From Rebecca billardiae RCC1528 (lineage: Eukaryota > Protista > Haptophyta): a stretch of DNA of 64,000 bases. Positions 2,974 to 48,339 of this stretch are shown here, one piece after another. Numbering within the stretch: position 1 is the first letter of the stretch; each line of letters opens with the position of its first letter. Made by a program: the position numbers and the translations under genes. The stretch spans positions 1,984,001 to 2,048,000 of the forward strand of contig OZ251227.1 of assembly GCA_965240325.2 (NCBI GenBank), in the 5' to 3' direction. The notes under the pieces are model-generated. The model worked only from the letters and a program-made list of their open reading frames with translations. It had not been told where the DNA came from and searched no databases.

Positions 2974-5900
2974 ATGCGGCCCGGTCCCGCTGCGCTGCGC
3001 GGCACGGCCGCCTTGGCGCTGCTCGCCGCCGCGTGCGGCGCGCGCGGGCTGGCTCCCGCGCGTTGCGCCCGGCTGACAGCAGCGTGTCCCCGCCGCGCCG
3101 CGGCCCCGCCCCGAGGGCTCGCGCGCGCCGCGGCCGAGCCACCCGACGACGATGGCCGCAGCGCGTACCGCGAGGGCCAGGTGGCGGTGCAGGAGCTCGT
3201 GCGCGAGCGCGAGCGCGATCCCGAGCCCAAGTTCGTCGCCTCGACGGTGTCAAAGCCGATGGGCATCACGTTCGCCCCCAACCCGGGCGGCAAGGGTGTG
3301 TACGTCAGCGCGCTCGACGAGGGCAGCGCCGAGGGCGAGCAGAAGCTGCAGAGCGTCTGCCTGGGAGACTACCTCGTCTCCGTCGAGGCGCTGGACGTGA
3401 CGCGGATGTCGCTGGACGAGGTGCTCGAGCTGCTGGACGAGGCGCCGCTGCTCGTGAACATCGGCCTGCAGCGCGGCGGCTCCGAGCCCTGGCGCGCCGT
3501 CGACGGCCTGAGCGTGGACGAGATGATGGCGGCTGTCCTCGCCCGCTACCCGGACGCGCTCTCCGAGTCCGACCAGGCGCAGCTGTACCGCGCACTGCAG
3601 AAGCTGAAGGAGGACGAGGCGGCGGGGTCGAGGACGCGCGGGGACGCGCCGCAAAGCGCGACGGCGCGCGGGCTCGAGCGCCTCTCGCTCGAAGTGCGCT
3701 CCTTTGTCGCGGTGCGCGCGGCGCGCGGCGCGCGGCGCGCGGCGCGCGGCGCGCGGCGCGCGGCGCGCGGCGCGCTGCACTCTGCGCGCGCGCGCCGCGC
3801 CGCGCCGCTGTTGGGTCCCGCGGCGCCGGGCCTGCCGCGGCGCGGCCCGCCCACACGCCGCGCGCGCCGCGTGCCCCGCCCCGCCGCGCCCAGGGCCTGC
3901 GCGTCAACCTGCGCGCCTTCGTCGACGGCTCCGTCGACAAGGCCGCCGTCGACCTGGCGGTGGCCCTGCGCACCGCAGAGTATTTGGTCAGGCGCGCGGC
4001 GATGGATTCGGGCAGGCTGCTCAGCCAGGGCAGCCGCGCGGTGGCGAGGCTGGCGGCGGCGGAGGGCGAGGAGGAGGACGAGGCGGAGGGCGCGAGCGGC
4101 ACGCCCTTCCGCGAGCTCCTCAAGGTGCCTGCGCTCACCGCCGTGCTCGGCGAGCCCGCCGGCGTGGAGCTGCCGCGCCCAACGGCAGGCACGGTTTCGT
4201 CCGTAAACGCCAGTCGAGAGCTGCTGGCCGTTGTGCTCGAGGAGGTGGCGAGCGCGGTGGAGCGCGGCGCGAGCGCGGAGGCGAGCGCGCGCGCGCGCGC
4301 GGCCGAGGAGGAGGCGCTCGAGCCGTCCGAGCGCGCCGCACTCGTCGCGCGCGCCGCGGCCAACGCCTCTGCCGTCGACTGGGCGAGGTTCGAGCGCCGA
4401 GCCAACAACCTGGGCGGCGCGCTCGGCGCAGACCTCAGCCGGGCGCTCAGCATGATCCGCTCGGACTACGAGGCGTTCGAGGTGCTCAAGCGCGAGCAGA
4501 TCTCGCTCGAGCCGATCCCCGGGGAGCAGCTGCTCGAGGGCGGGCGGCAGGGGCTTCTCCGGCTGCGTGCGGACGGGAGGCTGAGCTCGTTTGCGCGCAG
4601 CCGCGAGGAGCAGGCGCGGCGCGCGCAGTCGGACTCGCGGCGCGCGACCGCCACGTTCGCGGCCAAGGTGGGCGAGAGGGGGCTCAAGGACAGCGCGGAC
4701 ACGGTGGTGTACGGCGTGATGCCCGGCGCGAAGGTCGTGGGCAAGGCCTTCGCCAAGTCGGTCGCCGAGAACGTCGCGGAGCGCTTCGGCGCGCGCGGCT
4801 CGCGGCAGGCGGGCGGCGACAGCTCGGTGTCCGCGGACCTGAGTGCGGTGTGTGCGCGCGCGCCGGCCCAGGAGCGGACAGCGCGGACGCCATCCAAAAG
4901 GGCGAAGCGCGCGATGTGTGCACACACTGCGCGCGCGCGCGCGCCTGACCCACGCGCGGCCTCTGTGCGCGCCGCGCCCCCCCGCGCGCGTCGCGACCGC
5001 TTCCGACGCGCGCACTCGCCGCTGTGCGCCACGCAGGCGAGTGCCTTCATCGGCAGCGTGGCTCAGCAGCTGGGGGAACAGTACCGGGCTGACTTGGCGC
5101 AGGGCTCGAAGTCCGGCCCGCTCGGCGCGCCCGCGCCCGCGGCGCCGGAGGTGGCGGAGGGCCCCACCACCATGCTGCGCTCTTTCACGCGCACCCTGAC
5201 CGGCGCCGTGCGCACATCGCTCTCCTCCGCGGCCGAGGCGGCCGAGCGCGAGCGTGCGCGCCTCGAGCAGGCGCAGCGGGAGCTGAGCCAAGGGGTGCCT
5301 GCAGCGCAGGAGGCCGCCGCCCGCCCGCCTACCGCGGAGACGGCGGCGCCCAGCGCGCCCTCGCAGGCCGCAGTGTCGCCAGCGGCAGGCGGCACCAGCC
5401 CACCATTCGCCGTGGCGACCGCGGCCGAGCCTGCAGCGGCCCCCGCCACACAGCCGGCCGCGACAGCCTCCATCGATGTCGAGGCATCGGCGGTGGCGGG
5501 TGCGCCGGCTGCCGCCGCCGCCACCGCCGGCACGCCGGCCTCGGCGGCGCAGCCGATGGCCGGCGCGCAATCGTCCGCTGCGGGCGCTGCGCCACCCTCG
5601 CAGCAGGAGGGGGTGGCGACAGTGCAGTCGGGGCCGCCGCCGCCGCCCTCAGGGAGCGCGGCTCGCAGCGAGGTGGTCAGCGTGAGCGTGGTCTCAGAGC
5701 TGAGCGACAGTGCCGCGCCCGGCGTTGGCCTGCGCCGGGACACGGCAGAGGCGCTGCTGACGAGCGCGGCCGGCGGCGCGGACATGGACGAGGACGCGGG
5801 GAGCGACATCGACATCGACGTAGCGGTGAGCGTTGACGTCGAGGCCGAGGTGCGTGGGCGGAAGCTCAGCCTGCTCTTCGATCGGCTCGCCCTGTGGCTC

Positions 5901-6065
5901 GAGTTCGCCACCGCCGAGCTGTTCGAGCGGCTCGTCGACATTTACGGGCTGGACGGCGCGCGCGACTGGCAGCCGCTGCCGCTGCTGCGCCCCGAGCGCA
6001 ACGTGGTCGAGTTCCCGACGCAGCTGCTGTTTGAGGTGCTGACGCTGGCCATCTCGCGCGACTGA
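2974..6065 (+). CDS. PDZ-domain protein, probably plastid-targeted; exons 2974-3711, 3894-4847, 5037-6065
   Basis: Hydrophobic signal-like N-terminus. PDZ-like KPMGITFAPNPGGKGVYVSALDEGS..GDYLVSVE..DVTRMSLDEVLELL. GT-AG introns 3712-3893 and 4848-5036 join the frames in phase. Confidence 0.7.
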
Positions 6066-14586: not shown

Positions 14587-16463
14587 CTAGCTCCGTCGCC
14601 GAGTGAGCCGTGCTGCGACAACGGCCGTCAGGCCCACCCCCGCCACCAGCGCGCCCACGAGCAGCACGAGCGGGCTTTCCGCGTGACGCGCGTGCGCGGC
14701 CGCCTCCGCTTCCCGCCGCGCGTGCAGCGCGCAGTTTGCGTGGTTGATGGCGCACTGCTCGCCGCAGCACCCGCACATGCACAGCTCCCGGTCGCCGGCC
14801 TCCGGGTCCTTATACCCTTTCCGCGTGGCGCACTTGTTGAGGCCCCAGGACGTGCAGCGGTGGCGCATGCACATGCCGCACGTCAAGTGCCCCTCCTGCT
14901 TGTGCGGCACCGCCGTGCCGCCGTCCGTCACGCATCGCGCCTGGACCTCCAGCGGGATAGGCAGTTTGAACTGGTTCTGCGGCTTGTCGTAGCCTGGGTA
15001 GCCCAGCTCGCAGCCCTCGAAGTTGAGGGTCTCGAGCGCGCCGATCTCGGTCGGCAGCTGGCCCGTGAGCGAGTTGACACTCAGGTGGCTGCGCGCGCGA
15101 GAGGTGGCGACGCGGCACGTGCGCACACGAGGTCAGGCCGAGGGCAGCGCGCACGGGTGCAGCGCGCGCGCCTGGCGCCTGGCGCGCGGGCGCGGCACGC
15201 ACAGGACGGCCAGCGCCGAGAGCACGCCAAGCTCGGTCGGCACCTTGCCGGTCAGGTGGTTGCGGCCGAGCATGAGCGTCTCCAGCTTGGGCAGCGCCCC
15301 GAGCTCGGTCGGGATCGTGCCAGAGAGCGAGTTGTACACGGCGTTCAGCATCAGCAGCTCCTTCAGGTTGCCCAGCTCGGTGGGCAGCGTGCCCGTGATC
15401 ATGTTGAAGTCGACGCCACTGCGCGTGGCGCGCGCGCGCGAGCCGCGCGCAGGCGCGTGAGACCGAGTGGGTGCGCGTGCGCGTGCGGTGTGCGGCGCGC
15501 GGCGCACGGCGCGCAGCGCGCGGGGCGCGCGGGGCGGCGTGTGAGCGCGCGCTCACATTCTCTGCATGGCGGTGAGCTCGGTAAGGTCAGCGCTGACTGA
15601 GCCACTCAGCTGGTTCTCGAGCAACCCCAAGATCTGCAGCTTGGTCAGCAGCGCCAGCTCCGTGGGCAGCTTGCCCAGAAGCATGTTCTCATGCAACAGC
15701 CTGCGCGCGCGGTGTGCCGGGCACGCAGTTGCAGCGGCGCATGGCGTGAGGCCCACGGCCACTCGCGCCGGTCTGGCCCTCACGCGCGAGCGCGCACAGT
15801 GCGGTCAGCCCGGTGAGGAGGCCGATTTCCGTCGGAATCGTGCCATTCAGCTTGTTGCTGTGCAGATCCCTGCGCACCGCACGCGCCGCGCGCGCGCACA
15901 GCGCCCGCGCACAGGCGGCAGTCAGTGTTTGCCGCCTCTCCGCGCGTGCGCCCGCTGGGAGCGCCGGCACGCACAGATGCTCAAGCAGCGTAATCTCACC
16001 AATCTCCGACGGGATGGTACCAGAAATCGAGTTGTCCTGCAATTCGCTGCGCACGTGGGGTCAGCGAGCGCGGGTGATGCTGCGTGTCAGCCCCTGTCAC
16101 TGCGCGTGAAGTGACAGCAGTCCACTCGAGCGAGCACACTCGCTCCGCGTGCGCACGCACATCTTGGTGAGATGTGTCGCGCTGCCGATCTCGGTCGGGA
16201 TGGTGCCGGTGAGAGGAGCATTTACTACGAACCTGCGCGCCGCGGCGCCGGATCTCACGTGAGCACACCTCCCGTGCGCGCGCAGGCGCGAGGCGCGGCT
16301 CGGCCGACGGGCGGCCCACGCACAGAATGTCGTCGCACGATGCCAATTTTTGGACCACGCACTCATCCCACGCCTGATGCTCTTCGAGCGTCGCGCCCCG
16401 CGTCTGCACGCTGCCCAATGCAGCCAGCAGTGCCGCCACCCATGTGCGCCAGATGTGCCCCAT
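14587..16463 (-). CDS. Secreted/membrane LRR receptor-like protein; exons 16463-16324, 16232-16161, 16046-15975, 15869-15798, 15700-15557, 15418-15203, 15088-14587
   Basis: Signal peptide; plant-type 24-aa LRRs (NxLxGTIPTEIGxL); six GT-AG phase-2 introns; Cys-rich stalk; C-terminal TM (PLVLLVGALVAGVGLTAVVAA) with an RRRS tail. Confidence 0.9.
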
Positions 16464-16858
16464 CGCCCGTGGCGCCGCTAAGCTCGAGCGCGCCTGCTTG
16501 TCGGCCAGCGGCGAGCGGCGGGTAAATAAAGATTCAGTGCGCGGCTGAATTCGGTCGGAGGGGCGTGCGGCGGTCTTTTTAAACGGTCATTGGGCCCGAA
16601 CGCCCACTCCGCCGAACGCAAAGGCAGCGCGTGACTTGCTCTCCTGAGCGGGCCTCTTCCGGTGTGGCGCGCAGGCTTGCCGCGCGGGCGAGGCAGGCAC
16701 CGGCGACGCTCGGCAAGCGCCGCCATTGCGAAAAAAAGGAGCCTGCTCGCGGCCGCCATTGTAGCGACGCGCTTCGCCCCTCACCCCCGCGGCTGACAGA
16801 CGCCGCCCGGGCCAGCTGCGAGCCCATCCGCCGGGCGTTCGTCGGCGGCGGGCGCGTC

Positions 16859-17344
16859 ATGCCCTCCGCCACGGAGGCGCTCGCCGACGACATCGCATCC
16901 ACACACACATGGTTGACGACGACGCTCTTCTGTATCAGCCTCTTCGAGTCGGTATTCCGCCCCGACCCGACGAGCGTCGTGTGCCTGTTCGGCTTTTACT
17001 CGACCGCGCACCGCTCGGCGCCGGCGATGCGCTCCTTCACCGTCTTCCTTGCCGTCACGGTGGCGGTGGATGTGCTGTGGTTCATCGAGTATAGCCCCCT
17101 GCAGTACATGTCGCTTGACGCGCTCTGGGAGGTCCCGCGCCGCGGGCAGCTCGCGCTCATCCTCAGCTTGCTGAGTGTGCTCTACAAGCTCATCTCGATT
17201 GGTGTGAGCATCAGGCTGTACCGCGCGTACGCCGCTGAGCAAAAGATGGTCGAGGAGTACGGCCAGACATCGACGGGGGAGCCGGCGCTGGCGGGCAGCC
17301 TCTCCGCCAAGGACGGCACAGGCGCACCTGGCAGCTCGCGATGA
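16859..17344 (+). CDS. Small multi-pass membrane protein, AGTRAP-like
   Basis: Three to four hydrophobic helices. FLAVTVAVDVLWF and LALILSLLSVLYKLISIGVSIRLYR resemble the AGTRAP pattern (recalled, not searched). Confidence 0.6.
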   Translation: MPSATEALADDIASTHTWLTTTLFCISLFESVFRPDPTSVVCLFGFYSTAHRSAPAMRSFTVFLAVTVAVDVLWFIEYSPLQYMSLDALWEVPRRGQLALILSLLSVLYKLISIGVSIRLYRAYAAEQKMVEEYGQTSTGEPALAGSLSAKDGTGAPGSSR

Positions 17345-18300
17345 TGTTCTTGGTCGGTGGAACGACGGCCGCTGCCCACCAAGTCGACCGCCGGCGGCCT
17401 CGGCCGCCTTGATTGAGGTGCCAGCTAGGCCATGATGCTGCGTGGCCGCGCGTTGCTGTGGGGTGGGGTGGCATGTGCGCCCGTTCGCGCTCACGTGGCC
17501 TCGACGCTGATCGCGTACAGATGTCGCAGTCGGATGTGGCATATCTTTGCCGATCGGCCCGATCGCGACTGCTCGGTCACTCTTCTACGGATACTCTGCT
17601 ACTGTCTACTGAGTCTCACTCTCAGTCTCCGACGGTCTCAGTCTCACTCTCAGGTCTGAGTCCGGGACTACTGACTGTCGGCGAGTCGGACAGGACAGTC
17701 GCCGTCGCCAGTCCCACGGCCGATGATCCCGGGTCCGGATCGGGATCGTCCGCTGCCACCGTAACCGTAACCGTTCCGTCGTAGACGTAGTCGGCACTCA
17801 AAGTCTCAATCATCAACGTATTCGTCCCCAGCCCCAGGACCGCGGGAGGCGCGGCGGCGGGACCGTAATCCGTATCCGGCTCCGCCGGGGCGGCCCGGCG
17901 TCCGCGTGGCCGTGTAAACCGTTATACCGTTGAACGCGGGCCGAGTCGCGGTTTAAACGGAGCCACAGCCGCCACGGCCAGTAGTTGAACTCTAAGAAGT
18001 TACCGCTGCCATATATTGTCTGATAGTGAGCTACTAGGCTCGTGACACAAAGTGTGTCAACGACGGTATGATGAAGGTAAACGGAGGCGGTCGTCGGAGC
18101 AGAGACCAGAGTCCTGGGCCTGGCCCAACGTCACGAGACCGACCGTCCTTAGAGTAGTTAAGACGACTCTGCGAGCTGACGCACGCGACTCGAAACTCGC
18201 GGCACGGCATAGACGTACACGACTCATCCGTGAAGGGCTCCACACAGCACTCGCATGCGGAGCGCACAGCAGCCGCGCCCGTTTTGGCGCCGTGCCTGCA

Positions 18301-19743
18301 TCAGGCGCCCGTGACCCCAACGTCGCCATGGCTCGAGCTCATGTCAGCACCGCGGATGAACATGCGCATGTCCTGCTTGGTGTACACGTCTCTCCACAGC
18401 TCCTCGGCCGGGGGTGTGGGCGCCGCCTTGGCCTCCTCGATGGCCGCGTCGATCTCCTTGCGGATCTTCGTCTCCATCGCCTGAGCCACGGCCGCGCGCA
18501 CCGCGCGCGTCAGCCAGCGGCGCCCACGAGCACCGGTCGGCTCGCGGTGGGTGCGCGGCGCGCGGCGCGCGGCGCGCGGCGCGCGGCGCGCGGCGCGGCC
18601 GCGCGCAGCTGCTCTCACCTTGAGCTCCTCCGCGCTCGCAATCTCGTTCTTGAGGATGATCTGCTTGAGGCCCTCGATCGGGTCGCGCGCGCGGCGGACG
18701 CCGCTCACCTCTTCGCGGTCGCGGTACGTGACGCCTGGGTCGGACATCGAGTGGCCGTGGTAGCGATATGTGTCCATCTCAATCACCATCGGGCCGCCGC
18801 CGCCGCGCGCGTGCGCGGCCGCAAACTCGGTCGCCTGGCGCACCGCGAGCACGGACATGCCGTCGACCTTGATGCCGGGCATGTACAGCCCGCGCGTGTA
18901 GTAGTCGGTGTTCGCCGACGAGCGCGCCTTCGCCGTGCCCATCCCGTACTGGTTGTTCTCGCACACGAAGATGACGGGCAGCTTCCACAGGGCGGCCATG
19001 TTCATCGCCTCGAACAGCTGGCCCTGGTTGGACGCGCCGTCGCCGTACAGCGCAAACGCGACGCCGCCGTCGTCCCTGTACTTGTGGGCGAAGGCGAGGC
19101 CGGCGCCAAGGGGCTGCTGCGCACCGACGATCCCGTTCCCGCCGAAGAAGTTGTTCTTGGCCATGTACATGTGCATCGAGCCGCCCTTGCCCTTGGCGCA
19201 GCCCGTGTGCTTGCCCAGCAGCTCGGCGATGATGTTGGACGGCTTGTCGCCGCGCGAGAGCTGGTGGCAGTGGTCGCGGTACGCGGTGATGATCGAGTCC
19301 TTCCATGAGGTCGCCGCGTCCATCCCCACGCACACCGCCTCCTGCCCGTCGTACAGGTGGCAGAAGCCGCGGATCAGCTTCGCCTTGTACAGCGCGTCCG
19401 CGCCCAGCTCCATGCGCCGCATGCGGTACATGCTCTCGTAGTAGCGGAGCAGCTCGGCGCGCGAGGTGGTGACGCTCGCGGAGGGCGCGTCGCACATGTA
19501 CGTCTCGAACGGGGTCACCTCGAGCGTGATCGGCACGCTGTCCACCGCGTCCTTCTCGGCCTTGAGCGCGATCGCCGCTTGCACGTCGTCAGGCGTGACC
19601 GTGCCGCGCGGCCCGGACGCCGGGATGTCGAAGCCCTCGAGCCCGTGCTCCGAGATCAGCCGGTGGATGGATGGGCCAGCCTTCAACGCCAGCTCGCGCC
19701 GCAGCGCATGCCGCGCGACCACACCGCGCGACCACGCCAGCAT
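18301..19743 (-). CDS. PDHA1: Mitochondrial pyruvate dehydrogenase E1 alpha with N-terminal peripheral-subunit(E3)-binding domain; exons 19743-18619, 18480-18301
   Basis: [20 protein letters not shown], ThDP motif [24 protein letters not shown]. In-frame 138-nt GT-AG intron 18481-18618. Presequence [16 protein letters not shown]. Confidence 0.95.
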
Positions 19744-20097
19744 CAGGCCAAGATCGTCGGGGCGGCCGAGTCGCGACGCTTCCGAGACGATGGTACCAGT
19801 ATCCCGCAAGCCCGCGCGCCGAGGCCGACGACGCGCGGGAGATCAAGAGTCAACTGTGGGAAAGACCCCGCCGCCCACTGAGCAAGGGCCGTACACTGAT
19901 CTCAGATCTGAGATCATGAGCAGTCACCTGCTGACCTGCGGCTGCAGTCAGCAGTATGTAGGGTCCGTACGGTTTAGCTACGGTTTACTGCTACTGTAAG
20001 CAGAATCAGAGACGTCCTAGCCGAGTATGATAGTACTAGTTACACGACGGACGGACTGTGGTCCCCCAGATCGAGCTCCATCGCTGTCATGTTGCGA

Positions 20098-22660
20098 TCA
20101 TATGCTGCGGCTGCGGTGCAGCTTCAGCTTCATCGCCGGCGGCAGCCAGTCCAGCGCGCCCTCGCGCGTGTCTTCGCCATCCTCGCTCCAGCTCGTCTCG
20201 AGCAGCGACTGGTGATGCGTCCACTGCTCGTCGTCGCTGTCCGCGCCCGCCTCCTCGGAGCGGTAGTACTGGTCGGACGCGGCGATCGCGTTGAACACGT
20301 CGCGCAGCCGGCCGTTGAATCCGTCGAAGCCGCCGAAGCTCGCCTGGATCACGCCGAGCAGCCGGTCGCGGTCGGATTCGAGCTTGCACGCGGCGTTGCG
20401 CACGTCCACCTTGCCCAGCTCGACCAGCCACTCCTCGTAGCTCGAGTTGTCGAAGCCGTCGTCGACGCGGCACAGCACGATCTGCTCGAGGTCGCCGCCC
20501 GTCATCTCGATGAAGACGAAGAGCTCGACGACGCTGGCGCGCGGCGCGCGCGGGCGCGGGGCGTGAGCGCACGTGCGCGCGCGCGCGACTAGGCGCCACG
20601 CGGCGGGCGCACACCACCACAGGCGCTGCAAGTACGTGTTCCCCACGAGCGCGAGCAGCGTGCCGCAGCCGGCGAGGAAGACGGGGAGGCAGGCGAGACT
20701 CGTCTCCACGTCCTCCTGGTCGATGCAGCACTTGTCGCTGCGGGCGGCACAGCGCGGTCGCGGCGGCCAGTCAGCTCGAGCGCTGGCGCGCGCGCGGCGC
20801 GCCGCGCGGCGGCGCAGCGGCGCGGCGCGCACATCCACAGCTTGGGCTCGCGCTTGTGTGTGCGCACGAAGGCGCGCCGCCATTCCTGCAGCGTCGCCCA
20901 CTTGTCACTCGCGTCGTCAGTCCACGAGTGCTGCGCGCGGAGAAGGCGCGCGTGCGGGCGCACAGGCGGGTAGCAGCGCGGGGCGTGGGGGCGCGGGGCG
21001 CGGAGTGAACCGCCGCGTCGCTCGTGCAGCTGGCGCGCATGAGCACGCGCGCGTGCGCGCGGCCCGCTGCTGCGGCCCGGGCGGCGCGCGCGGCGCGCGC
21101 CGTGCGCCGCGCAGCGCGCACCGAGACGAAGGCGTCAACCTCGCCAAACATGGCTGGTGACGAGCGCGCGTACAACTCCCGGCTCGGCGAGTGCGACGCC
21201 ATGTCGGCATACGTCAGCCTGTCGAGCGTGATCGCGCGGAAGTGCGCCTGCGCGCGCCGCTGGACGTCAGCGGACGAGTGTCGGCCGATGAGCGCGGCGA
21301 TGCCCGCCGCCGCCGTCACGGCCTCGCTCCGTATGGCGAGGAAGGCCTGCACGCGCATGCGCAAGTCGGGGCGCAGCACGGCCCCGCCGCCCACCGCGAA
21401 GTTGACCACGCCCACCAGGAGCAGCGCGCGCCACAGCGCGGCCGCCTCCTCCGCGAGGTCCGTCCGCACCAGCCCGCCCGCGAGGCCCGCGCCCAGCAGG
21501 GCGAGGGTCGTGAGGCCGACGCGGACGAGCGTCACGCCCAGGCCCACCCACATGGCGTCGAGGCAGGCGCGCGCGGAGACCACCGCGCCGCGGCTCTCGC
21601 GAAGCCACCACCCCACGCGCACGATCTCGTGCACGCCCAGCCCGAGCAGGCAGAGCCACATCAACAGGACCAGAGCGCTGAACCACGGCGGCACGTCGCC
21701 AAACCCGCTCAGCCCGAGGGCGCCGCGCCGCCACAGCGCGAGCTGGCGGCGCACGTGCAGCAGCAGCGCGAGCGTGGCGATGGAGCAGCCGCACAGCATG
21801 CCCAGCATCAGCTTCACCGCCGCGCGCCGCTCCGTCGGCATCGCGAGGATCAGCACGAGCAGCGCCGGGCCGGAGGGCAGCAGCGCGAGCTGGAAGCCGT
21901 GCGTGTGCGCCTCGTCAAACAGGACGAGCGTGAAGCAGAACGACGAGACGAAGAGCGCGCTGGCGAGCGCGAGGAGCGGCATCTGCACGCGCCGGCGGAA
22001 GCGCCGGCCCTCCGCATGCGCCGCGTCCAGCCGCCTCCGGATGTCCGAGCGGTCGCGCGGCGAGACGAGCGGCGAGCTGGACGAGCCGCGGCGCAGCGCG
22101 ATCTTGGTCGGGCTGTTCACACCCGAGGCCGAGCCGCGGCGCACCGCGGGCTTGGTCGGGCTGCCCGCGCCGGCGGCCGAGCCGCGGCGCGCCTTCGTGG
22201 GGCTGCTCGCGCTCGCGCCCGAGCCGCGGCGCAAGCCCGGCTTGAGCGGGCTGCCCATCGCCATGATCGAGCGGCCGCTGCTGCCCCACGGAGTGGACTT
22301 GCGCAGTTGCCGCACCTGCGGCGAGGGCGAGGTGCCCGGCGAGGGCGAGGTGCTGTGCCCGGCGGACACGCGGAGCGTGGCCAGGTTTGGAGACTCCCGC
22401 CGCACCGCCAACGACGACGTCGAACCCTTCCCCTCTGCCAACGGCGACGGCAGGGGCGTGGGCAGCGTGGCGCGCGGACCGCTCAGCCGCACCCTGCGAG
22501 TGCCGGCGACACGTAGGCGCAACTGACCCGTCGCCTCGGACATGCGCCGGGGTGGTGCTGTGTCGTGATCGTCCTCTTCGGGAGGCGTGACCGTGGGCAG
22601 CGGCAGCGCCGCGAGCGTCTGCCCGCGGCGCTGCGGCGGCGCATCGTCGCCGTGTACCAT
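20098..22660 (-). CDS. Multi-TM protein with C-terminal TIR-like domain; exons 22660-21122, 20930-20833, 20737-20615, 20533-20098
   Basis: Spliced product reads DAFVSHSW..LWIDKCCIDQ..LPVFLAGC..LLALVGNTYLQRLWCVVELF, preceded by about six hydrophobic helices. Three GT-AG introns give a continuous frame. Confidence 0.8.
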
Positions 22661-22778
22661 AGCGGCAAAGTCGATGCCTCAACCAGTGGCGCGCTCGGTT
22701 AAGACATTTAGTCATTTACCCACTTCACCGGCCGAATAATAGTAGACTGCGCGCACATATTCAATCAGCACAGCCGGC

Positions 22779-23369
22779 ATGCGGGCCGACCTCGCTGCGA
22801 CGGTGCTGCTGGCCTTCGCCGCGAGCAATGGCCGTGCGTACGCGCACTGGAGTCTACCGACAGGAGTGCGCTTCGAATGTACGGGGTGTTCGAAGTGCTG
22901 CCGGGTGCGCGGCGACGTGTGGGCCACCAGGCGCGAGACGCAGCGCATGGCAAGAGCTGTGGGCGTCAGCGCGGATGACTTCGAGAAGCGCTACGTGTCA
23001 CGCCGGAAGGTGGACGTGCCGCCGGGCTGGGCGCGCCTGGCTAGTCAATCGGATGGCGGCTGCGTCTTCTTGGACAAGGATGGCAAGTGCACGGTCTACG
23101 ACGCACGGCCCTTGCAGTGCCGTGCGTACCCGTTTTGGCCTGAAGTGTCCGGCTCACGCGAGACCTGGGCTCTAGAGGCGGTCCTACCGGATGATGCGCC
23201 GGGACCAGGCCGAAGATGGAGCCCAGGTAGTGGCGGGTGTGAAGGGATCTCGGCCAGTGCGCGGTGGATCCCGGGGCCAGTCGTCGCGTTGCGTGAGGCC
23301 GAATATGCGCTGTACGATGCACGCTTCAAGCGCGCTCGACAGGCACAGCGCGACTCGTCACGCACATAG
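22779..23369 (+). CDS. YkgJ/UPF0153 (CxxCxxCC) putative Zn/Fe-chelating protein
   Basis: FECTGCSKCC ... CVFLDKDGKCTVYDARPLQCRAYPFW; hydrophobic N-terminus. Confidence 0.88.
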   Translation: MRADLAATVLLAFAASNGRAYAHWSLPTGVRFECTGCSKCCRVRGDVWATRRETQRMARAVGVSADDFEKRYVSRRKVDVPPGWARLASQSDGGCVFLDKDGKCTVYDARPLQCRAYPFWPEVSGSRETWALEAVLPDDAPGPGRRWSPGSGGCEGISASARWIPGPVVALREAEYALYDARFKRARQAQRDSSRT

Positions 23370-39788: not shown

Positions 39789-41003
39789 CTACTTGCCTAT
39801 GGTCTCCACAACCTGGCGCAGCACGAGGGCTGACATCGGCCCGTGCGGCGATCGCACGGTGACGCGCGCTTGCACCGTCTGCGAGAGGGCGCGGCACGCG
39901 AGGCGCACACGAGGGGGGGAGGGGGGGCACGTTCAGCACGGTGGCGCGAAGGTGTGCGCTGCACGCCGGACGACCGCGGCAAGGCGCCTCTGAGGCTCCC
40001 CAACCCGCCCGCGCTCGCTCGGTCTGTACGCTTGCTCGCGCGGTGTGCCGCAGCGCGGGCGCGGTGCGCGCGGTGTGCGCGCGCCTGCAGGTTGATCTCG
40101 ATGCGCAGCATGAGGAGCGGGCACTCCGGCTGCGCCTTGCCCTTGAGCACGATGCAGCCAATCGCCACCAGGTTGGTCGGCGCCGGATCGACGCCCTGCA
40201 GGGCACGGCGCAGCCACGGCGGGTGGGGCCACGCGCGCGCCTGAGTGAGCGCGCGGCCGGCGCGGCACGGCCAGCGCGCGCGGCCGGCGCGCACGCGCAC
40301 GCGCTCGCAGCGGCAGCACGGCGCCGCGCACCGCAAGGTTAGCAAGGTGCAAGCCCTTTGCCGAGAGCTCGCTGAAGAGCGCCATGTTCTGAGGCCGCTC
40401 CTTGAGCGTGGTGATCTGCTGCGCCTCGTTCGGCGGGCCGCCCGCGCCGTTCCACCGCTCGAAGAAGGGCGCCGCCTCGAGCCCCGGCATGGGCGCGCAG
40501 AACTTCGTCGGGCTCACGGGCAGCTTGAGGTGCAGCCCCGCGGCGGGCGCGCCCATGAAAGAAAGACGGAGCGACTGCGCGCGGCCGAGGCGCGCGCGCG
40601 AGGCGCGGCGCGGCGGGCTGAGCAGCGCGCCGTGTGTGCACCGGGGGCGCGCCGCGCGTCACGCCGCGCGCCACGCCGCGCGCCACGCCGCGCGCACCGG
40701 CGGCGCGCCGAAGGGCGCCAGGCACTCGAGTGTGATCATCTGCTGTAATTGCTGCCGCGGCTGCACCGTGTGCGGCACTGTCGACGCCTGCACGGTGACC
40801 TCGGGCACGCTGACGACGGAGGCGGTGAAGGAGACGAGCGGCTGCGCCGTCTTGTTCCCGTAGTACAGCACCAGCCGCCCCTGCGCGCCCTTGTACTCGC
40901 TCTTGAGCCCCACCTGCACGCTGCCATCCTCGTACAGGACACCGTCGCTGCGCACGGACAGTGGGATGAACGAAGGCGGCTCGACCGGGCCGGACCCGCC
41001 GGA

Positions 41004-41036
<33 letters not shown>

Positions 41037-43265
41037 GCTCATCAGGCCGGCGACGTCGATGCCGCCGGCGGCGGGGGGCGGCGGCGGCGGCGCGCCGCCG
41101 CCGCCGCCGCCGCCCAGGTCGAGGCCGAGAAGGTCGGGGGCGCCGGCACCGCCGCCCGACGGCGGCGGCGGCGCGCCGCCGCCGCCGCCGCTGCCGAGGT
41201 CAAGCCCGCCGAGCATGGCGTCGACGCCGCCGCCGCCACCGCCGCCGCCGTCGATCTCGCCGCCCAGCAGATCCGCCGATCCACCGCCGCCGCCGTTCGC
41301 CGCCAGCCCGCGCCCGCCGTCCGCGTCGGCCGCGGCGGCGGCGCCGCCGCCGCCGCCGGCCGCGCGGTTGCCCGATGGCTGGCGCGCCAGTCTCTCCGCC
41401 ACCACATCGCCGCGGCCCTGCCCCGTCTCGTCGGCGACGCGGACGCGGATGCGCTTGAGCACGGCGGACTCGCGCTCGGGGAACGCGGGCATCATCTCGA
41501 GCACCGCCGCCTTCAGCTCCGAGAACCGGCCGCTCGTGAGCACGCTGTACTCGAGCGCGCGCTGCTGCACCTCCTGGTCGAGCGCGGAGAGAGACGAGCG
41601 CAGCGCGCGCGACACCTCGCCCTCGAGCTCGGGGTAGACGTGCGCGAGCTTGACGAAGGTGGAGAGCAGCAGCGCGCGCGTCTGCAGGTCCGTCCCGGCG
41701 TAGTGCCCGTGCAGCGCGCGGAACTGCTCGCGCGACGACATGCCGCGCTCCTCCGCGACCAGGTGGCCAAACTCGCCGAGCACGTATGCGCAGATGCGCA
41801 CAAGCTTGTCCGGCGGGTGCGCGTCCTGCAGCAGCGCGCGGAAGACGGTCTGCGTGGCGTACTTCTGCAGGGCCTCCTCGTTGGTGATGATCTGCACCAC
41901 GCGGTACCAGATCTCCTCGGACACCTGCTCCCCCGCCGTCTTGATCAGCTGCAGCACCACGTCCACGTACCACGCGTAGTCGTCGGCAAAGCGCTCGGCC
42001 AAGATGGCGATCTTGAGCACCAGCTCCTCGCGCAGGTTGTAGTCGGCGTTGGCGAGGTAGGAGAGGAGCTCGCGGATGGTCTCGCGGCAGTTCGAGTCGT
42101 CGCACATCGAGTACACCAGGTCGAGCGCGCGCCGCCGGATCGACACGTCCGCGTCCTTGAGCGAGAAGAGGATGGTCGACTGGTGCTTCTTGATGTCGTG
42201 CGCGCAGTCGGGATGCTGCGAGAGCTTGGCCATCGTCTCGAGGCCGAGGTAGCGGATGTTGGCCTCGCGGATCGAGATGAAGCGGCCGAGCAGCGCGACG
42301 GCCTGCGGCAGCAGGTCCGTCGCGCGCCCCTGGTGGATCACCACGTTGATCGCCTCGAAGAGCACGCCGTGCGTCGCGTTGTTCTTGTTGACGTTCTTTG
42401 TCACGTCCGTGCCGGTGATGACGCGCTGCAGCACGGTCACGAGCCGGTCGATGAGCACGCGGTCGTGCGCGGGGTCGAGCGGCGGGAAGAAGGTGATGAG
42501 GCGGAGCAGCCGGATCTGCAGCCACGGCGACGGGATGCCGTAGTACAGGTAGTCGTTCGAGTACTCCTTGTTGATCACGATGCGCGTGAGCAGCATGATG
42601 GCGCGCTGCGGCGCGCGCTCCCAGCCCTCGGGCGAGTACGCGACGAAGCCGAGGACCATCGAGATGATGGCGGTGAGCACGCCGAGGTTGGAGTCGTCGA
42701 GGAGCGCGAGCACGCGGTCCGCGATCTCGGTCGGGTTGATGCACTCCTGGTTCTTGCGGTACAGCCGCAGCAGCGTGAGCGCCGCCTTCTTGCGCACAAA
42801 CACCTTGGTCATCTTGTCGAGCAGGATCTTCTGCACGTCGGAGGCGAGGGTCTCGGCGAACTCGCGGCCGCCGACGGTGCAGATCGAGCCCATCGCGAGG
42901 CACATGAAGTTGTCCTGCTGCGACGTCAGGTCGTTCTTGATCGAGTTGATGATGAGCCGGAGCAGCTCGTCGCCCTCGCGCAGCAGCAGCGAGCACGCCA
43001 TGTACCCGACCATCTTCTCGGAGTACTTGGGCGAGGAGATGAGCCCGACGGACTCCATGTGGCCGAAGTCGATCTCGTACCCAAGCATGAACATGTACAG
43101 GATCTTCCACACGTACTTCTTCCGCTGGTACCCGTTGAGGTCGCCCGGCTTGGAGAACTTCTGCCGGATGTTCGCCATCTCCTTGTCGATGCGCTTCTGC
43201 TCCTGCTCCTTGGACTGGCAGTTGCGGATGTCGGAGATGAAGACGACAAGCCCACGCATCGCCAT
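39789..43265 (-). CDS. AP2A: AP-2 complex subunit alpha (alpha-adaptin); exons 43265-40698, 40574-40332, 40195-40085, 39878-39789
   Basis: MRGLVVFISDIRNC..KEMANIR..YQRKKYVWK, Gly-rich hinge, ear domain (GVLYED, LKLPVSPTKF, GVDPAPTN, LRIE, RVTVRS); three introns, the last with a GC donor. Confidence 0.95.
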
Positions 43266-43568
43266 GCTGGCCACCGGGCGCGCGCCGCGCGCGCCCGCTC
43301 ACTCGCCTGCGCCGATTCGAGCGCCGCCCTGCGGCGCTGGCGGCGTCCTCGCTCGCCGCTGGAGGCCTTTCTCGGCGCTGCGTTGACACCCCCGAGTCCG
43401 GACCTTGTCGACGACGCCGCGGCCCGGGTGCCTTACCGGACTTCCGCGAGCGCATGTTTGCGCCAGGCGTGGGCGCGAATTTATTGTCTGCTGAATTCAA
43501 GGTCGTGCTTAGTGCTCGTCGCGGGCCTCGGTCAGCGCGCCGGCGCGCGGCGGCGCACCGAGGCGAGC

Positions 43569-44399
43569 ATGCTCGGCCCGGAGGTCAAGCGCAAGCTGTG
43601 CAACTGCAAGAACTCGAAATGCCTCAAGCTGTACTGCGAGTGCTTCGCCGCGGGCATGTATGCGCGCGCGCGCGAGCGCCACCAACCCGCGCGCGTGCCA
43701 CGCGAGCGCCCGCAGCTCACGCGCAGTGCGCGCCACCGCGCGCGCGTGGGCGGGCCCCCACAGCTACTGCAATGGATGCAACTGCCATAGCTGCTGCAAC
43801 AACCCGGCGAACGATGAGATCCGTCGCCGCGCCATCGACGCCACGCTCGAGCGCAACCCGTCGGCGTTCCGGCCAAAGATCGCGCACGGCCAGGCCAGCC
43901 ACGCCGCCGATGGCTCGTCCGGCAGCCGGCACAACAAGGGTTGCCACTGCAAGAAGTCGAGCTGCCTGAAAAAGTACTGCGAGTGCTACCAGGTCGGCGC
44001 GCTTGCCACCGGGCGCGCGCGCGCGCGCGCGCCCGCGCGCCCGCGCGATTCGCGTCACCTCACGAAGGACTCGTCTGCGCCGGCACACTCGTCCGCTGCT
44101 GTACGCGAGCGCAGGCGGGGATCCTCTGCACCGGGATCTGCAAGTGCATCGACTGCAAGAACTTCGAGGGCAGCAACGAGATCGGCTCGTTCGGCCGCGC
44201 GGGCGCCTCCGTGAGCGTGAGCAGCGCCGGCTCTGGCCGACGCACGCCCTCGCCGCCCGCGGGCAAGCGGCCACGGCTGCATGCCAGCGGCGGTGCGCGC
44301 GCGGTCGCCTCCGCGGCGCTCTACCCGCCGTACGCTGGCGTGCCCTTCGCCGGTGCAGTCGGCGAGGTCGGCGCACTTGCGCTGCCCGCCGGCTCCGCA

Positions 44400-46351: not shown

Positions 46352-47650
46352 CTAGACCTTGAGGTGTGCTGCTGTCGCAGCAATCGAAGCGGCCGGCGAT
46401 CGAGCAGCAGTCGCTTCAGACTCAGTCCTCGCTGGCGGCCCGCTGCCATCCGGCTCCGAGCCTGAGTCCGAGCCGGTGCCTGACGCCCCCGTTGTCGGCA
46501 TGGCGGTGTTGGCGGCGCGCGCTTGGCGCTTTGTCGGCGACGCGTTCGGAGTGCGATTGCCACGCGCGCCTCGCCGACCCTCCGCCTCCGCCGTGCTTGC
46601 GCCGCCCTCCTTAGCTGCCTCGCTGCCATCCGAGCCAGCGGCGGCGCCTGCGCCCCCAGCACCAGCCTTGGCGCCTTCACTGCCATTGGCGCTACTCGCC
46701 GAGAACCCGCCGCCGCTCGCCCGCCAGAGCTGGTAGAGCTTGGGCGCGGACTTGCCGAAGGCATCCAGCTCGCTGCACGTCTTCGCGTGCCCCGCCTCCG
46801 TCTCGTCGCGCGTGTCGAGCACGCGGTACGCCCAGCACACGCGCTCGGTCGAGTAGGAGTCATGCGAGACGGGCAGCCCGGCCTTCACCCGCAGCACGCG
46901 GTGGTACACGCCGCGGTACGCGCGGCGGAACTCGGCGAAGAGCGCGCCGAGCGAGGCGTGCTCGAGCGGCTTGAAGTAGAGCTCAGGCCGGCGCGAGAGC
47001 CCCAGCGCGCCCCACAGCCCGCCCGCGCGCACCGCGAGCACAATGTGCTTGCACGTCTGCCCCTCGATCCGCGTCTTGAAGCTGAGCGGCACGCGCTCGA
47101 CGCCGCTCAGGTCCTGCGTGAGCAGGAGCGCGACGAAGAGCGCCTCGACGCACTTGACCGGCAGCGCGGTGCGCACGATCGTGCGCGCCGTCTCGAGGAT
47201 CCGCGCGACCGGCCGGTTCTTGCGCACGTCGAAGAAGTCGGTGCCGGTGTGGTTGTACTGCAGCTTCTCAATGAACGACTGCACGGCGCGCAGCTTGTCC
47301 GGCATGCGCGCGTAGCGGTCGAGGGAGGGCGGGGCGGGGTACGGCGGCATCTGCAGCTCGTTATCCGCGCGTATCCGTCGGATCCGCGCTTGCAGCTCCG
47401 CGTCCTCGCTCGCCGCAACCGCATGCGTGTCAGCAGCCTCTGCGCTTCCATCGTCGTCGTCGCTACCCGCGCCCGCCCCCAAGGCCTCGTCATCGGAGCC
47501 GTCATCCAGGGCGACTGGCGCGTTGTCATCATCGTCGCTGTGCCGCTCACTGACACCTTCGTCTAGCTCATCCGATCCCCTCGCAGATGCCGACGCGCTG
47601 CTCGAGCTCCTGCACGCTGGAGAGGCGCGCTCACCCAAGGCGGCAGCCAT
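46352..47650 (-). CDS. VASH: Vasohibin (tubulinyl-Tyr carboxypeptidase)
   Basis: LQYNHTG.FFDVRKNRP, ALPVKCVEA (catalytic Cys), PLSFKT, HIVLAV (His), GALGLSRR. Confidence 0.93.
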   Translation of the reverse strand: MAAALGERASPACRSSSSASASARGSDELDEGVSERHSDDDDNAPVALDDGSDDEALGAGAGSDDDDGSAEAADTHAVAASEDAELQARIRRIRADNELQMPPYPAPPSLDRYARMPDKLRAVQSFIEKLQYNHTGTDFFDVRKNRPVARILETARTIVRTALPVKCVEALFVALLLTQDLSGVERVPLSFKTRIEGQTCKHIVLAVRAGGLWGALGLSRRPELYFKPLEHASLGALFAEFRRAYRGVYHRVLRVKAGLPVSHDSYSTERVCWAYRVLDTRDETEAGHAKTCSELDAFGKSAPKLYQLWRASGGGFSASSANGSEGAKAGAGGAGAAAGSDGSEAAKEGGASTAEAEGRRGARGNRTPNASPTKRQARAANTAMPTTGASGTGSDSGSEPDGSGPPARTESEATAARSPAASIAATAAHLKV

Positions 47651-48070
47651 GGCCGCGGCGGCGGCGCGAGAGCGCCCTCCGATTGAAAACGGTCGTCGGG
47701 TTTGCTGATGCGATTTATCTCGCCTGCCTGAGTTACTGCGCTGCTTGCCTCCGCAGGCGAGCAGCGCGCAGTTTACGCCGGGCATGTGGACCTGCCCACC
47801 CTTCATCTTCCAGTTCTTCCCTTCGGCTGGGGCTCGATCAGTCGACGTGGCGTCGCTCACAGCGCAGGCAGGTGTTTGGCGCGGCTGCACTCTCGAGGTG
47901 GCTGGGATACAACATCCAGGTGCAGCACCCTCCCCGTGTGGAGTGTCAGAGCGCGCTCCCGAGCGCGTGCCTCCGAGCGCGGGGCGGCCGCTTGCTGCAA
48001 TGGCCGCCTCGATGAGGTGCGGCAACGCGCCCCTCACCTGCCTGCGCCGGTCTGTTTTGTGGCGGTGTTT

Positions 48071-48339
48071 TAAATTCCCCTTTATAACGGGCTCCGGGTG
48101 ATCAGACTGGCGGCCGAAGCCTCCAGCCCTACCCTGGCCAGCCCCCAACCAATAACCACCACCCTCACCCAACCTCAAACCACTGACCGAGAGGCACCAA
48201 GTGCCTTGACACCACTCCACTGTGGACAGCCCGCCTCCAGAGGGGGCGGGGGTATGCCATTGCCGACAGCATACAAGCCCAACACTCTTTGTGCAGTGTT
48301 GGATGGCGTCGATCACGCCTTAAGCCATTATGGGGGTAG
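48071..48339. mobile_element. Short repeated element, long copy; left 53 bp identical to 50143-50195
   Basis: taaattcccctttataacgggctccgggtgatcagactggcggccgaagcctc is shared; both copies end near tatgggg(g)ta. Confidence 0.5.

Follow-up and report, generated by a model that had tools for sequence, protein, structure and literature searches.

A peripheral subunit-binding domain at the N-terminus of a pyruvate dehydrogenase E1-alpha paralogue in haptophyte algae

The stretch of DNA analysed here, called the window below, comprises 64,000 nucleotides (nt) of the genome of Rebecca billardiae RCC1528 (contig OZ251227.1, positions 1,984,001 to 2,048,000), and it carries a gene for the alpha subunit of mitochondrial pyruvate dehydrogenase (PDH E1-alpha) in which a folded peripheral subunit-binding domain (PSBD), maintained by selection, forms the N-terminus of the mature protein. 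Modular assembly of multienzyme complexes is classically illustrated by the 2-oxoacid dehydrogenase complexes. In the standard picture their docking modules, the PSBDs, are placed on the core, that is on the acyltransferase E2 or on the E3-binding protein (E3BP), with E1 and E3 as passive clients; in the present case it is a client that bears the module. The gene is the Pavlovophyceae member of an E1-alpha paralogue (PSBD-E1-alpha) which is present in both haptophyte classes. Because the fusion is conserved across the haptophytes, a major marine algal lineage that includes the coccolithophores, the PDH complex (PDC) of these algae is probably wired differently.

The first-pass annotation of the window, made from the sequence alone, had read a 33-residue peptide at 19680-19582 as a PSBD sharing its exon with the E1 core. 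On translation this peptide is exact, corresponding to residues 22-54, and it does lie in the exon of the core. The domain identity was confirmed by the Pfam profiles E3_binding and E1_dh, which gave 25.6-28.5 and 354 bits, respectively. E3_binding (PF02817) aligns over positions 2-36 of the 36 in the profile, with 25.6 bits (E 1.5e-5) on the protein from exon 1 and 28.5 bits (E 1.8e-6) on its first 98 residues, the curated cut-off being 23.7 bits. A sequence search of the PDB with the 41-aa piece alone yielded 17 matches, every one of which bears a PSBD (best E 0.0017), and a profile of the PSBD and connector of the family found fungal, archaeal and bacterial E2 PSBDs in the PDB at E 1e-6 to 1e-4 and human E3BP at E 4e-3. 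Moreover, prokaryotic E2 proteins match 19689-19570 with 45-51% identity in plain tblastn. The AlphaFold2 model of residues 19-85 (mean predicted local distance difference test score, pLDDT, 86.5; helices at model residues 6-14 and 33-50) has the compact PSBD fold of helix 1, a loop with a short helical turn and helix 2. The first ~28 Foldseek matches of this model against the PDB are all PSBDs with a root-mean-square deviation (rmsd) of 1.5-2 A and a target-normalised TM-score of up to 0.86, with E-values that are weak (>=0.01) owing to the tiny size of the domain, and they include PSBDs in E1 complexes (1w85, 9h1n) and in E3 complexes (9h2i, 1zy8, 3rnm) as well as the free E3BP domain (2f60). 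Of the basic residues of helix 1 and the loop which form the ‘electrostatic zipper’ of PSBDs with E1 or E3, those at columns 27 and 48 are missing throughout the family; such residues are a common and not a universal feature of PSBDs, so the domain should be regarded as a derived PSBD. Residues 21-55 are a genuine PSBD, with a similarity far beyond chance.

Beyond the PSBD, the protein belongs to the mitochondrial/alphaproteobacterial type of PDH E1-alpha, the alpha subunit of a heterotetramer-type E1. Exon 1 alone scores 404.8 bits with TIGR03182 (PDH_E1_alph_y; cut-off 393.85), and the core is 57-69% identical to the canonical mitochondrial E1-alphas of plants, animals and the second haptophyte paralogue, with which it has the thiamine diphosphate (ThDP) motif and the 12-residue loop in common. 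In the canonical proteins the presequence runs directly into the N-terminal arm, without PSBD and connector, whereas the ~50 extra residues of the family (PSBD plus connector) are located exactly between the two. It had also been stated that canonical E1-alphas lack a PSBD and that no lipoyl domain precedes the one found here, and both statements hold, the first in the alignments and the second in the Pfam analysis, where the protein has E3_binding and E1_dh as its only domains, and at the DNA level, where the upstream ORF on the same strand stops at 20100-20098, the 354 nt between it and the ATG being non-coding. In the full-length AlphaFold2 model (375 aa; pLDDT 79, predicted TM-score 0.82) residues 21-100 all have pLDDT >90. 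This model has helices at 24-32, 45-47 and 51-68, followed by strands at 71-75, 80-82 and 90-94 within the arm that is common to canonical E1-alphas. The notion of a long flexible tether had to be given up, as a short rigid helix (residues 51-68, pLDDT >90) is predicted after the PSBD, and the look of the domain in the model is that of an appendage held by a stiff, short stalk and not of a bead strung on a long flexible linker.

The gene consists of two exons and one intron on the minus strand (19743-18301) and starts with an ATG at 19743 (Table 1). After removal of the 138-nt intron the spliced junction aligns with the pavlovophyte protein P0133, and exon 1 of Diacronema lutheri (377 aa) ends at the position aligned with the end of exon 1 in the window and is followed by GT. 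The residues encoded by exon 2 have homologous counterparts at the C-termini of P0002 and P0133. When ORFs are simply called, the result (18301-19809, 502 aa) runs through the stop-free intron and thereby includes 46 spurious residues; the intron (18481-18618) itself holds ~6 copies of CGCGCCG. The leaders of the orthologues are Arg-rich, vary in length and sequence, and stop just short of an invariant Lys, and we infer that the presequence would be cleaved off before the PSBD.

The closest named relative of the window protein is KFE25_011020 of the pavlovophyte haptophyte D. lutheri, with 76-78% identity, where, as in the window, PSBD and catalytic core share one exon. The view that the architecture is peculiar to one genome was not sustained, since the paralogue occurs in both haptophyte classes beside canonical E1-alphas. 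PSBD-type E1-alphas are found in Diacronema (P0002), in KAJ1620891.1 (P0133), in Scyphosphaera apsteinii (P0013), in Prymnesium parvum (KAL1528514.1, P0149), in Emiliania huxleyi (P0039, P0313) and among dozens of marine metagenome and metatranscriptome sequences, and canonical forms without the domain in Diacronema (KAG8458779.1), Prymnesium (P0056), Phaeocystis and Chrysochromulina; Diacronema and Prymnesium thus have both types within the same species. Around 31 of the 45 aligned proteins are of the PSBD type, and 27 of the 45 match PF02817 at E <=0.001, with a prymnesiophyte copy as the best (7.7e-10). In addition, PSBD-containing transcripts are known in several species. We define the paralogue by the order of presequence, PSBD, connector and E1-alpha arm, and its shared derived states in the PSBD are K21, Q/H27, I30, K/R46 and T48, all of which are present in the window protein (with H27 and R46). 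Among the best 120 matches, every PSBD-bearing E1-alpha seen falls within the haptophyte part of the E1-alpha tree; clusters of E1-alpha at 50% identity conceal full-length PSBD-E1-alphas, so the fusion may also exist beyond the haptophytes. When the PSBD and connector profile was run against 1.84 billion cluster representatives at this level, ~20 short fragments of the same family were followed by prokaryotic E2s with two or three PSBDs, and no donor E2 or E3BP for the domain was found in this search. Eight proteins, none of them new, came out of a word-indexed search in which the first 100 residues of the Scyphosphaera protein served as query. One further sequence, P0003, combines the core encoded by the PSBD gene P0133 with a canonical N-terminus, identical to that of P0017. 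Alternative first exons were considered for it and rejected; the switch point lies inside a 17-residue stretch that is identical in both paralogues (pavlovophyte sequences), and P0003 is most likely a transcript-assembly chimera.

In E. huxleyi the domain can be spliced out. The transcript products P0313 (435 aa) and P0116 (395 aa) differ only by 40 residues, exactly the PSBD, which are absent from P0116. In the genome of strain CCMP1516 (locus L001, KB869641.1) the presequence and the PSBD are encoded by exon 1 (5287-5475). The form with the PSBD uses the donor AAG/GTGGTG at 5475/5476 and the acceptor at 5543, while the form without it uses an upstream donor, AAG/GTGAGC at 5355/5356, with the same acceptor. 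The PSBD looks like a separable module, as the alternative donor removes exactly its 40 codons. The first-pass annotation had named splicing out of the domain as a point that would speak against its reading; such an isoform does exist in E. huxleyi, but the PSBD-containing one predominates, the PSBD-less junction being present in one assembled transcript only versus seven sequences with the PSBD, and the shorter isoform may be minor or condition-dependent. An Emiliania-type donor is absent from the window gene, where the Lys codon AAG is followed by GCT and not by GT, and no in-frame cryptic intron was found around its PSBD, the single GT..AG pair examined being 127 nt long and out of frame; nor does an intron directly follow the domain. 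The PSBD of the window appears constitutive, as far as can be judged from the DNA. The public RefSeq model of the E. huxleyi gene, XP_005758986.1 (328 aa; 6001-8176 on L001), starts at 6001 and misses the exons in 5287-5600; as it lacks those for the presequence, the PSBD and the N-terminal arm, it conceals the fusion.

The domain is under constraint. Across 28 aligned orthologues K21, P24, G44, P45 and D53 are invariant and A22, I30, T48 and V54 nearly so. Relative to D. lutheri, the ratio of nonsynonymous to synonymous substitution rates (dN/dS) is 0.37 in the PSBD (35 codons, a small sample), about 1.05 in the connector (15 codons, likewise a small sample), whose sequence is poorly conserved, and 0.20 in the core (272 codons). 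The suspicion that some basic residues of the consensus are altered proved right in a comparison with 109 PSBD instances of prokaryotic E2s, which were retrieved using the family profile. Column 27 in helix 1 is basic in 86% of these E2 PSBDs and in 0% of the family, where Gln or His is typical (His in the window), and column 48 in the loop is basic in 76% versus 0%, Thr being typical of the family. Conversely, column 46 is always Lys or Arg in the family (100% basic; Arg in the window) versus 23% in the E2 PSBDs. Column 31 is basic in 82% versus 44%, with Arg as the typical residue, the prymnesiophyte copies being basic and the window having Ser, and column 28 is basic in 96% versus 90%, with Arg retained in the window (R28). 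The net charge of the window PSBD, counted from the sequence, is about -2. Columns 27, 46 and 48 are altered alike in both haptophyte classes; the remodelled binding face is hence a selected surface, distinct from that of the usual E2 PSBD. We take columns 27, 31 and 48 to be equivalent to Arg135, Arg139 and Arg156 of the Geobacillus PSBD, which presumably bind both E1 and E3. Column 27 would also correspond to Lys276 of human E2, which we assume to be required for binding of E1-beta. As for the loop, human E3BP presumably has the pattern GP-R-G-I, that is GP-(R/K)-G-nonbasic, at columns 45-48, which is taken here as a lead and not as a test.

The origin of the fusion was addressed by a tree of E1-alpha built from the catalytic core only. 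In this tree the haptophyte E1-alphas form one group (95/79 support), within which the window protein, Diacronema, P0001 and P0133 group together (98/97). The pavlovophyte PSBD type clusters with the pavlovophyte canonical type (82/72), and the prymnesiophyte PSBD type with the prymnesiophyte canonical type (99/95). A constraint that unites all PSBD types in one clade lowers the log-likelihood by 16 units, and with p = 0.057 in the approximately unbiased (AU) test a single origin of the PSBD type is not rejected. The N-terminal extension, on the other hand, argues for one ancient fusion, because both classes have it inserted at the same point, with homologous connectors and common derived residues. 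The conflict between tree and extension could be due to gene conversion between the paralogues, or to independent duplications of an ancestral PSBD gene with subsequent loss of the domain in one copy each.

Compared with the PSBDs of E2 acyltransferases (Geobacillus E2p in 1w85 and 1ebd, Escherichia coli E2p in 9h1n and 9h2i), the haptophyte domain has the same ~35-residue two-helix fold within 1.5-2 A and the common motif of a P opening helix 1, a G-x-G-P-x-G loop and a D-V opening helix 2. However, the E2 domain is located between the lipoyl domain and the catalytic core, whereas the haptophyte one is located at the N-terminus of E1-alpha. With E3BP, also known as protein X (human PDHX; 2f5z, 1zy8), it would have in common that it is a dedicated PSBD off the catalytic E2, and the structural match is 1.8 A to 2f60 and 1.6 A to 1zy8. 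Unlike E3BP, the haptophyte protein has neither a Biotin_lipoyl nor a 2-oxoacid_dh domain in Pfam, so it cannot sit in the core, and its PSBD is carried by a catalytic E1 subunit. PSBD-E1-alpha is therefore not an E3BP, although it may work like one. PSBDs outside acyltransferase E2s are already present among solved structures: chain A of 7qjm, deposited as ‘alpha/beta-hydrolase (202)’, has an N-terminal PSBD (residues 34-76) on a non-acyltransferase and shares the best PDB E-value for the family profile (1.3e-6), the attached enzyme being a different one. Two systems outside the PDC also bear comparison. The N-terminus of human E1o contains a ‘dual subunit-binding domain’ recognised by E2o and E3 (PMC8146983), so that subunit binding is again found at the N-terminus of an E1, in a complex whose E2 lacks a PSBD (PMC8146983, PMC9974300); unlike the haptophyte PSBD, this region consists of short peptides (residues 18-40) on a homodimeric E1 of another complex, and homology is not claimed. 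Furthermore, E3 is recruited by E3BP in the PDC and by MRPS36 in the eukaryotic 2-oxoglutarate dehydrogenase complex (OGDHC), whose E2 has no PSBD (PMC9974300). MRPS36/KGD4 is thus a lineage-specific replacement for PSBD-mediated recruitment of E3 (PMC9974300), but in contrast to the haptophyte case it is a separate small protein and neither a domain fusion nor a PSBD.

As to what the domain does, we consider it possible, with a probability of roughly 0.4, that E1 with its own PSBD recruits E3 and so works like E3BP. Each alpha2beta2 E1 assembled from the PSBD-carrying subunit would have two docking modules of its own, whose most likely putative client is the dimer of E3 (dihydrolipoamide dehydrogenase). 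An E1 seated on the E2 core would then bring E3 along, the job of E3BP being moved onto E1, and the PSBD-less form, which is the canonical paralogue and in E. huxleyi also the splice isoform, would supply E1 without docking and thereby set the E1:E3 ratio. The wider proposal is a tentative one: recruitment of E3 in haptophytes might have moved from the E2/E3BP core to E1-alpha as a third independent eukaryotic solution, after E3BP in the PDC and MRPS36/KGD4 in the OGDHC, with the dose set by the PSBD-less paralogue and additionally by the splice site in E. huxleyi. That eukaryotes appear to have solved the docking of E3 anew in one lineage after another, in human E1o with the N-terminus of an E1, would fit, by analogy, with recruitment of E3. 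This client is preferred mainly for the loop pattern that we take to be E3BP-like, which is a lead only. Several points weigh against recruitment of E3. The E2 PSBDs of fungi and archaea, at E about 1e-6, score better with the family profile than human E3BP does, so a specific kinship in sequence with E3BP is absent; the short rigid connector of the model might limit the reach of the domain and leave doubtful room for a 100-kDa E3 dimer; and the residues that would favour E3 above E1-beta are interpreted from background literature and not from results of the analysis.

A rather unlikely alternative to E3 as the partner is E1 itself, with the tethered PSBD binding the two-fold site of E1-beta2 in its own or a neighbouring heterotetramer, and so tuning or blocking the docking on E2 or clustering E1. 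The PSBDs in E1 complexes (1w85, 9h1n) match the domain structurally as well as those with E3, the predicted helical connector would hold the PSBD near E1, and the presence of a PSBD-less paralogue or isoform fits a pair of dockable and non-dockable forms. Yet columns 27 and 48, which are so frequently basic in E2 PSBDs, are never basic in this family, and if a Lys at column 27 is needed for binding of E1-beta in the human PDC, as we assume, its absence here would argue against this client; moreover, with two PSBDs but a single beta2 site per E1, one PSBD would be free regardless. It is more doubtful again that the PSBD has been recruited for some other partner, such as a PSBD-less core or adaptor or a regulatory kinase or phosphatase, or for stabilisation of the E1 assembly. 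For this speak the strongly derived, family-specific binding face (invariant K21, Lys/Arg at column 46, T48 and I30), the example of 7qjm and the confident modelling of residues 21-100, which is compatible with a fixed structural appendage; the PSBDs in the solved complexes compared here, however, bind E1 or E3, and nothing found speaks for any particular partner of another kind. That the stretch is a non-functional relic, a part of the targeting peptide or an artefact of the gene model is highly improbable. The window copy lies only ~2 bits above the Pfam cut-off and E. huxleyi is able to splice the domain out, but both haptophyte classes keep the domain, its structural residues being invariant and its dN/dS 0.37, prymnesiophyte copies reach E 7.7e-10, the fold prediction is confident, the domain shares an exon with the core in both the window and D. 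lutheri, and transcripts containing it come from several species. This reading is effectively refuted by the conservation.

Both domains are well known; their combination and the placement are new. The first-pass annotation had made the novelty depend on the architecture not being widespread and characterised already. It is widespread in haptophytes, but no published characterisation was found, and the full-text literature searches yielded no paper that describes or discusses a PSBD on E1-alpha, although Pfam labels assigned automatically in public databases do show PF02817 combined with PF00676. Binding of E3 by the PSBD would mean that a central metabolic machine has a new architecture, and it would provide a natural experiment on how flux depends on the E1:E3 ratio and on the proximity of the two. 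Were E1-beta the partner, the domain would act as an intrinsic regulator of the attachment of E1. The splice switch of E. huxleyi offers a handle on regulation. Automated annotation misses the fusion: the exon is absent from the RefSeq model of E. huxleyi, and the ORF call in the window reads through the intron.

Table 1. Features of the PSBD-E1-alpha gene in the window (residue numbers refer to the protein).
Feature	Position	Strand	Remarks
Whole gene, PSBD-carrying mitochondrial PDH E1-alpha	18301..19743	-	spliced protein 434 aa
Exon 1	19743-18619	-	presequence, PSBD, connector, arm, E1_dh
Intron, 138 nt, GT..AG	18618-18481	-	in frame, stop-free
Exon 2	18480-18301	-	C-terminal 59 residues and TGA stop
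Predicted mitochondrial presequence, residues 1-20	19684..19743	-	4 Arg/Lys, 1 acidic residue
PSBD / E3_binding, residues 21-55	19579..19683	-	PF02817, fold prediction, PDB sequence matches
Connector, residues 56-70	19534..19578	-	Ala/Lys/Glu/Asp-rich; predicted extension of PSBD helix 2
N-terminal arm, residues 71-103	19435..19533	-	aligns with canonical E1-alpha N-termini
E1_dh catalytic domain in exon 1, residues 104-375	18619..19434	-	PF00676, 354 bits
ThDP motif GDG...NN, residues 234-264	19044-18952	-	intact
12-residue loop, residues 326-337	18768-18733	-	intact

The same-strand ORF just upstream of the E1-alpha gene has no Pfam match, and no other gene for the PDH complex was found within the 64-kb window. 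When the D. lutheri locus (L002, within 10 kb on each side of the gene) was compared with 16000-23000 of the window, similarity was confined to the E1-alpha gene; the local gene order is not conserved between these two pavlovophytes. The G+C content of the window is 69.5%, and many reading frames across it hold long ORFs, which means that a gene cannot be deduced from the length of an ORF by itself. Elsewhere in the window, the ORF at 40749-43790 on the plus strand contains a Tesmin/TSO1-like CXC (TCR) cysteine-rich domain at residues 949-971 (31.5 bits, cut-off 23.5), and the ORF at 46352-48316 on the minus strand has a strong match to Vasohibin (PF14822, 210.6 bits, E 2.8e-62).

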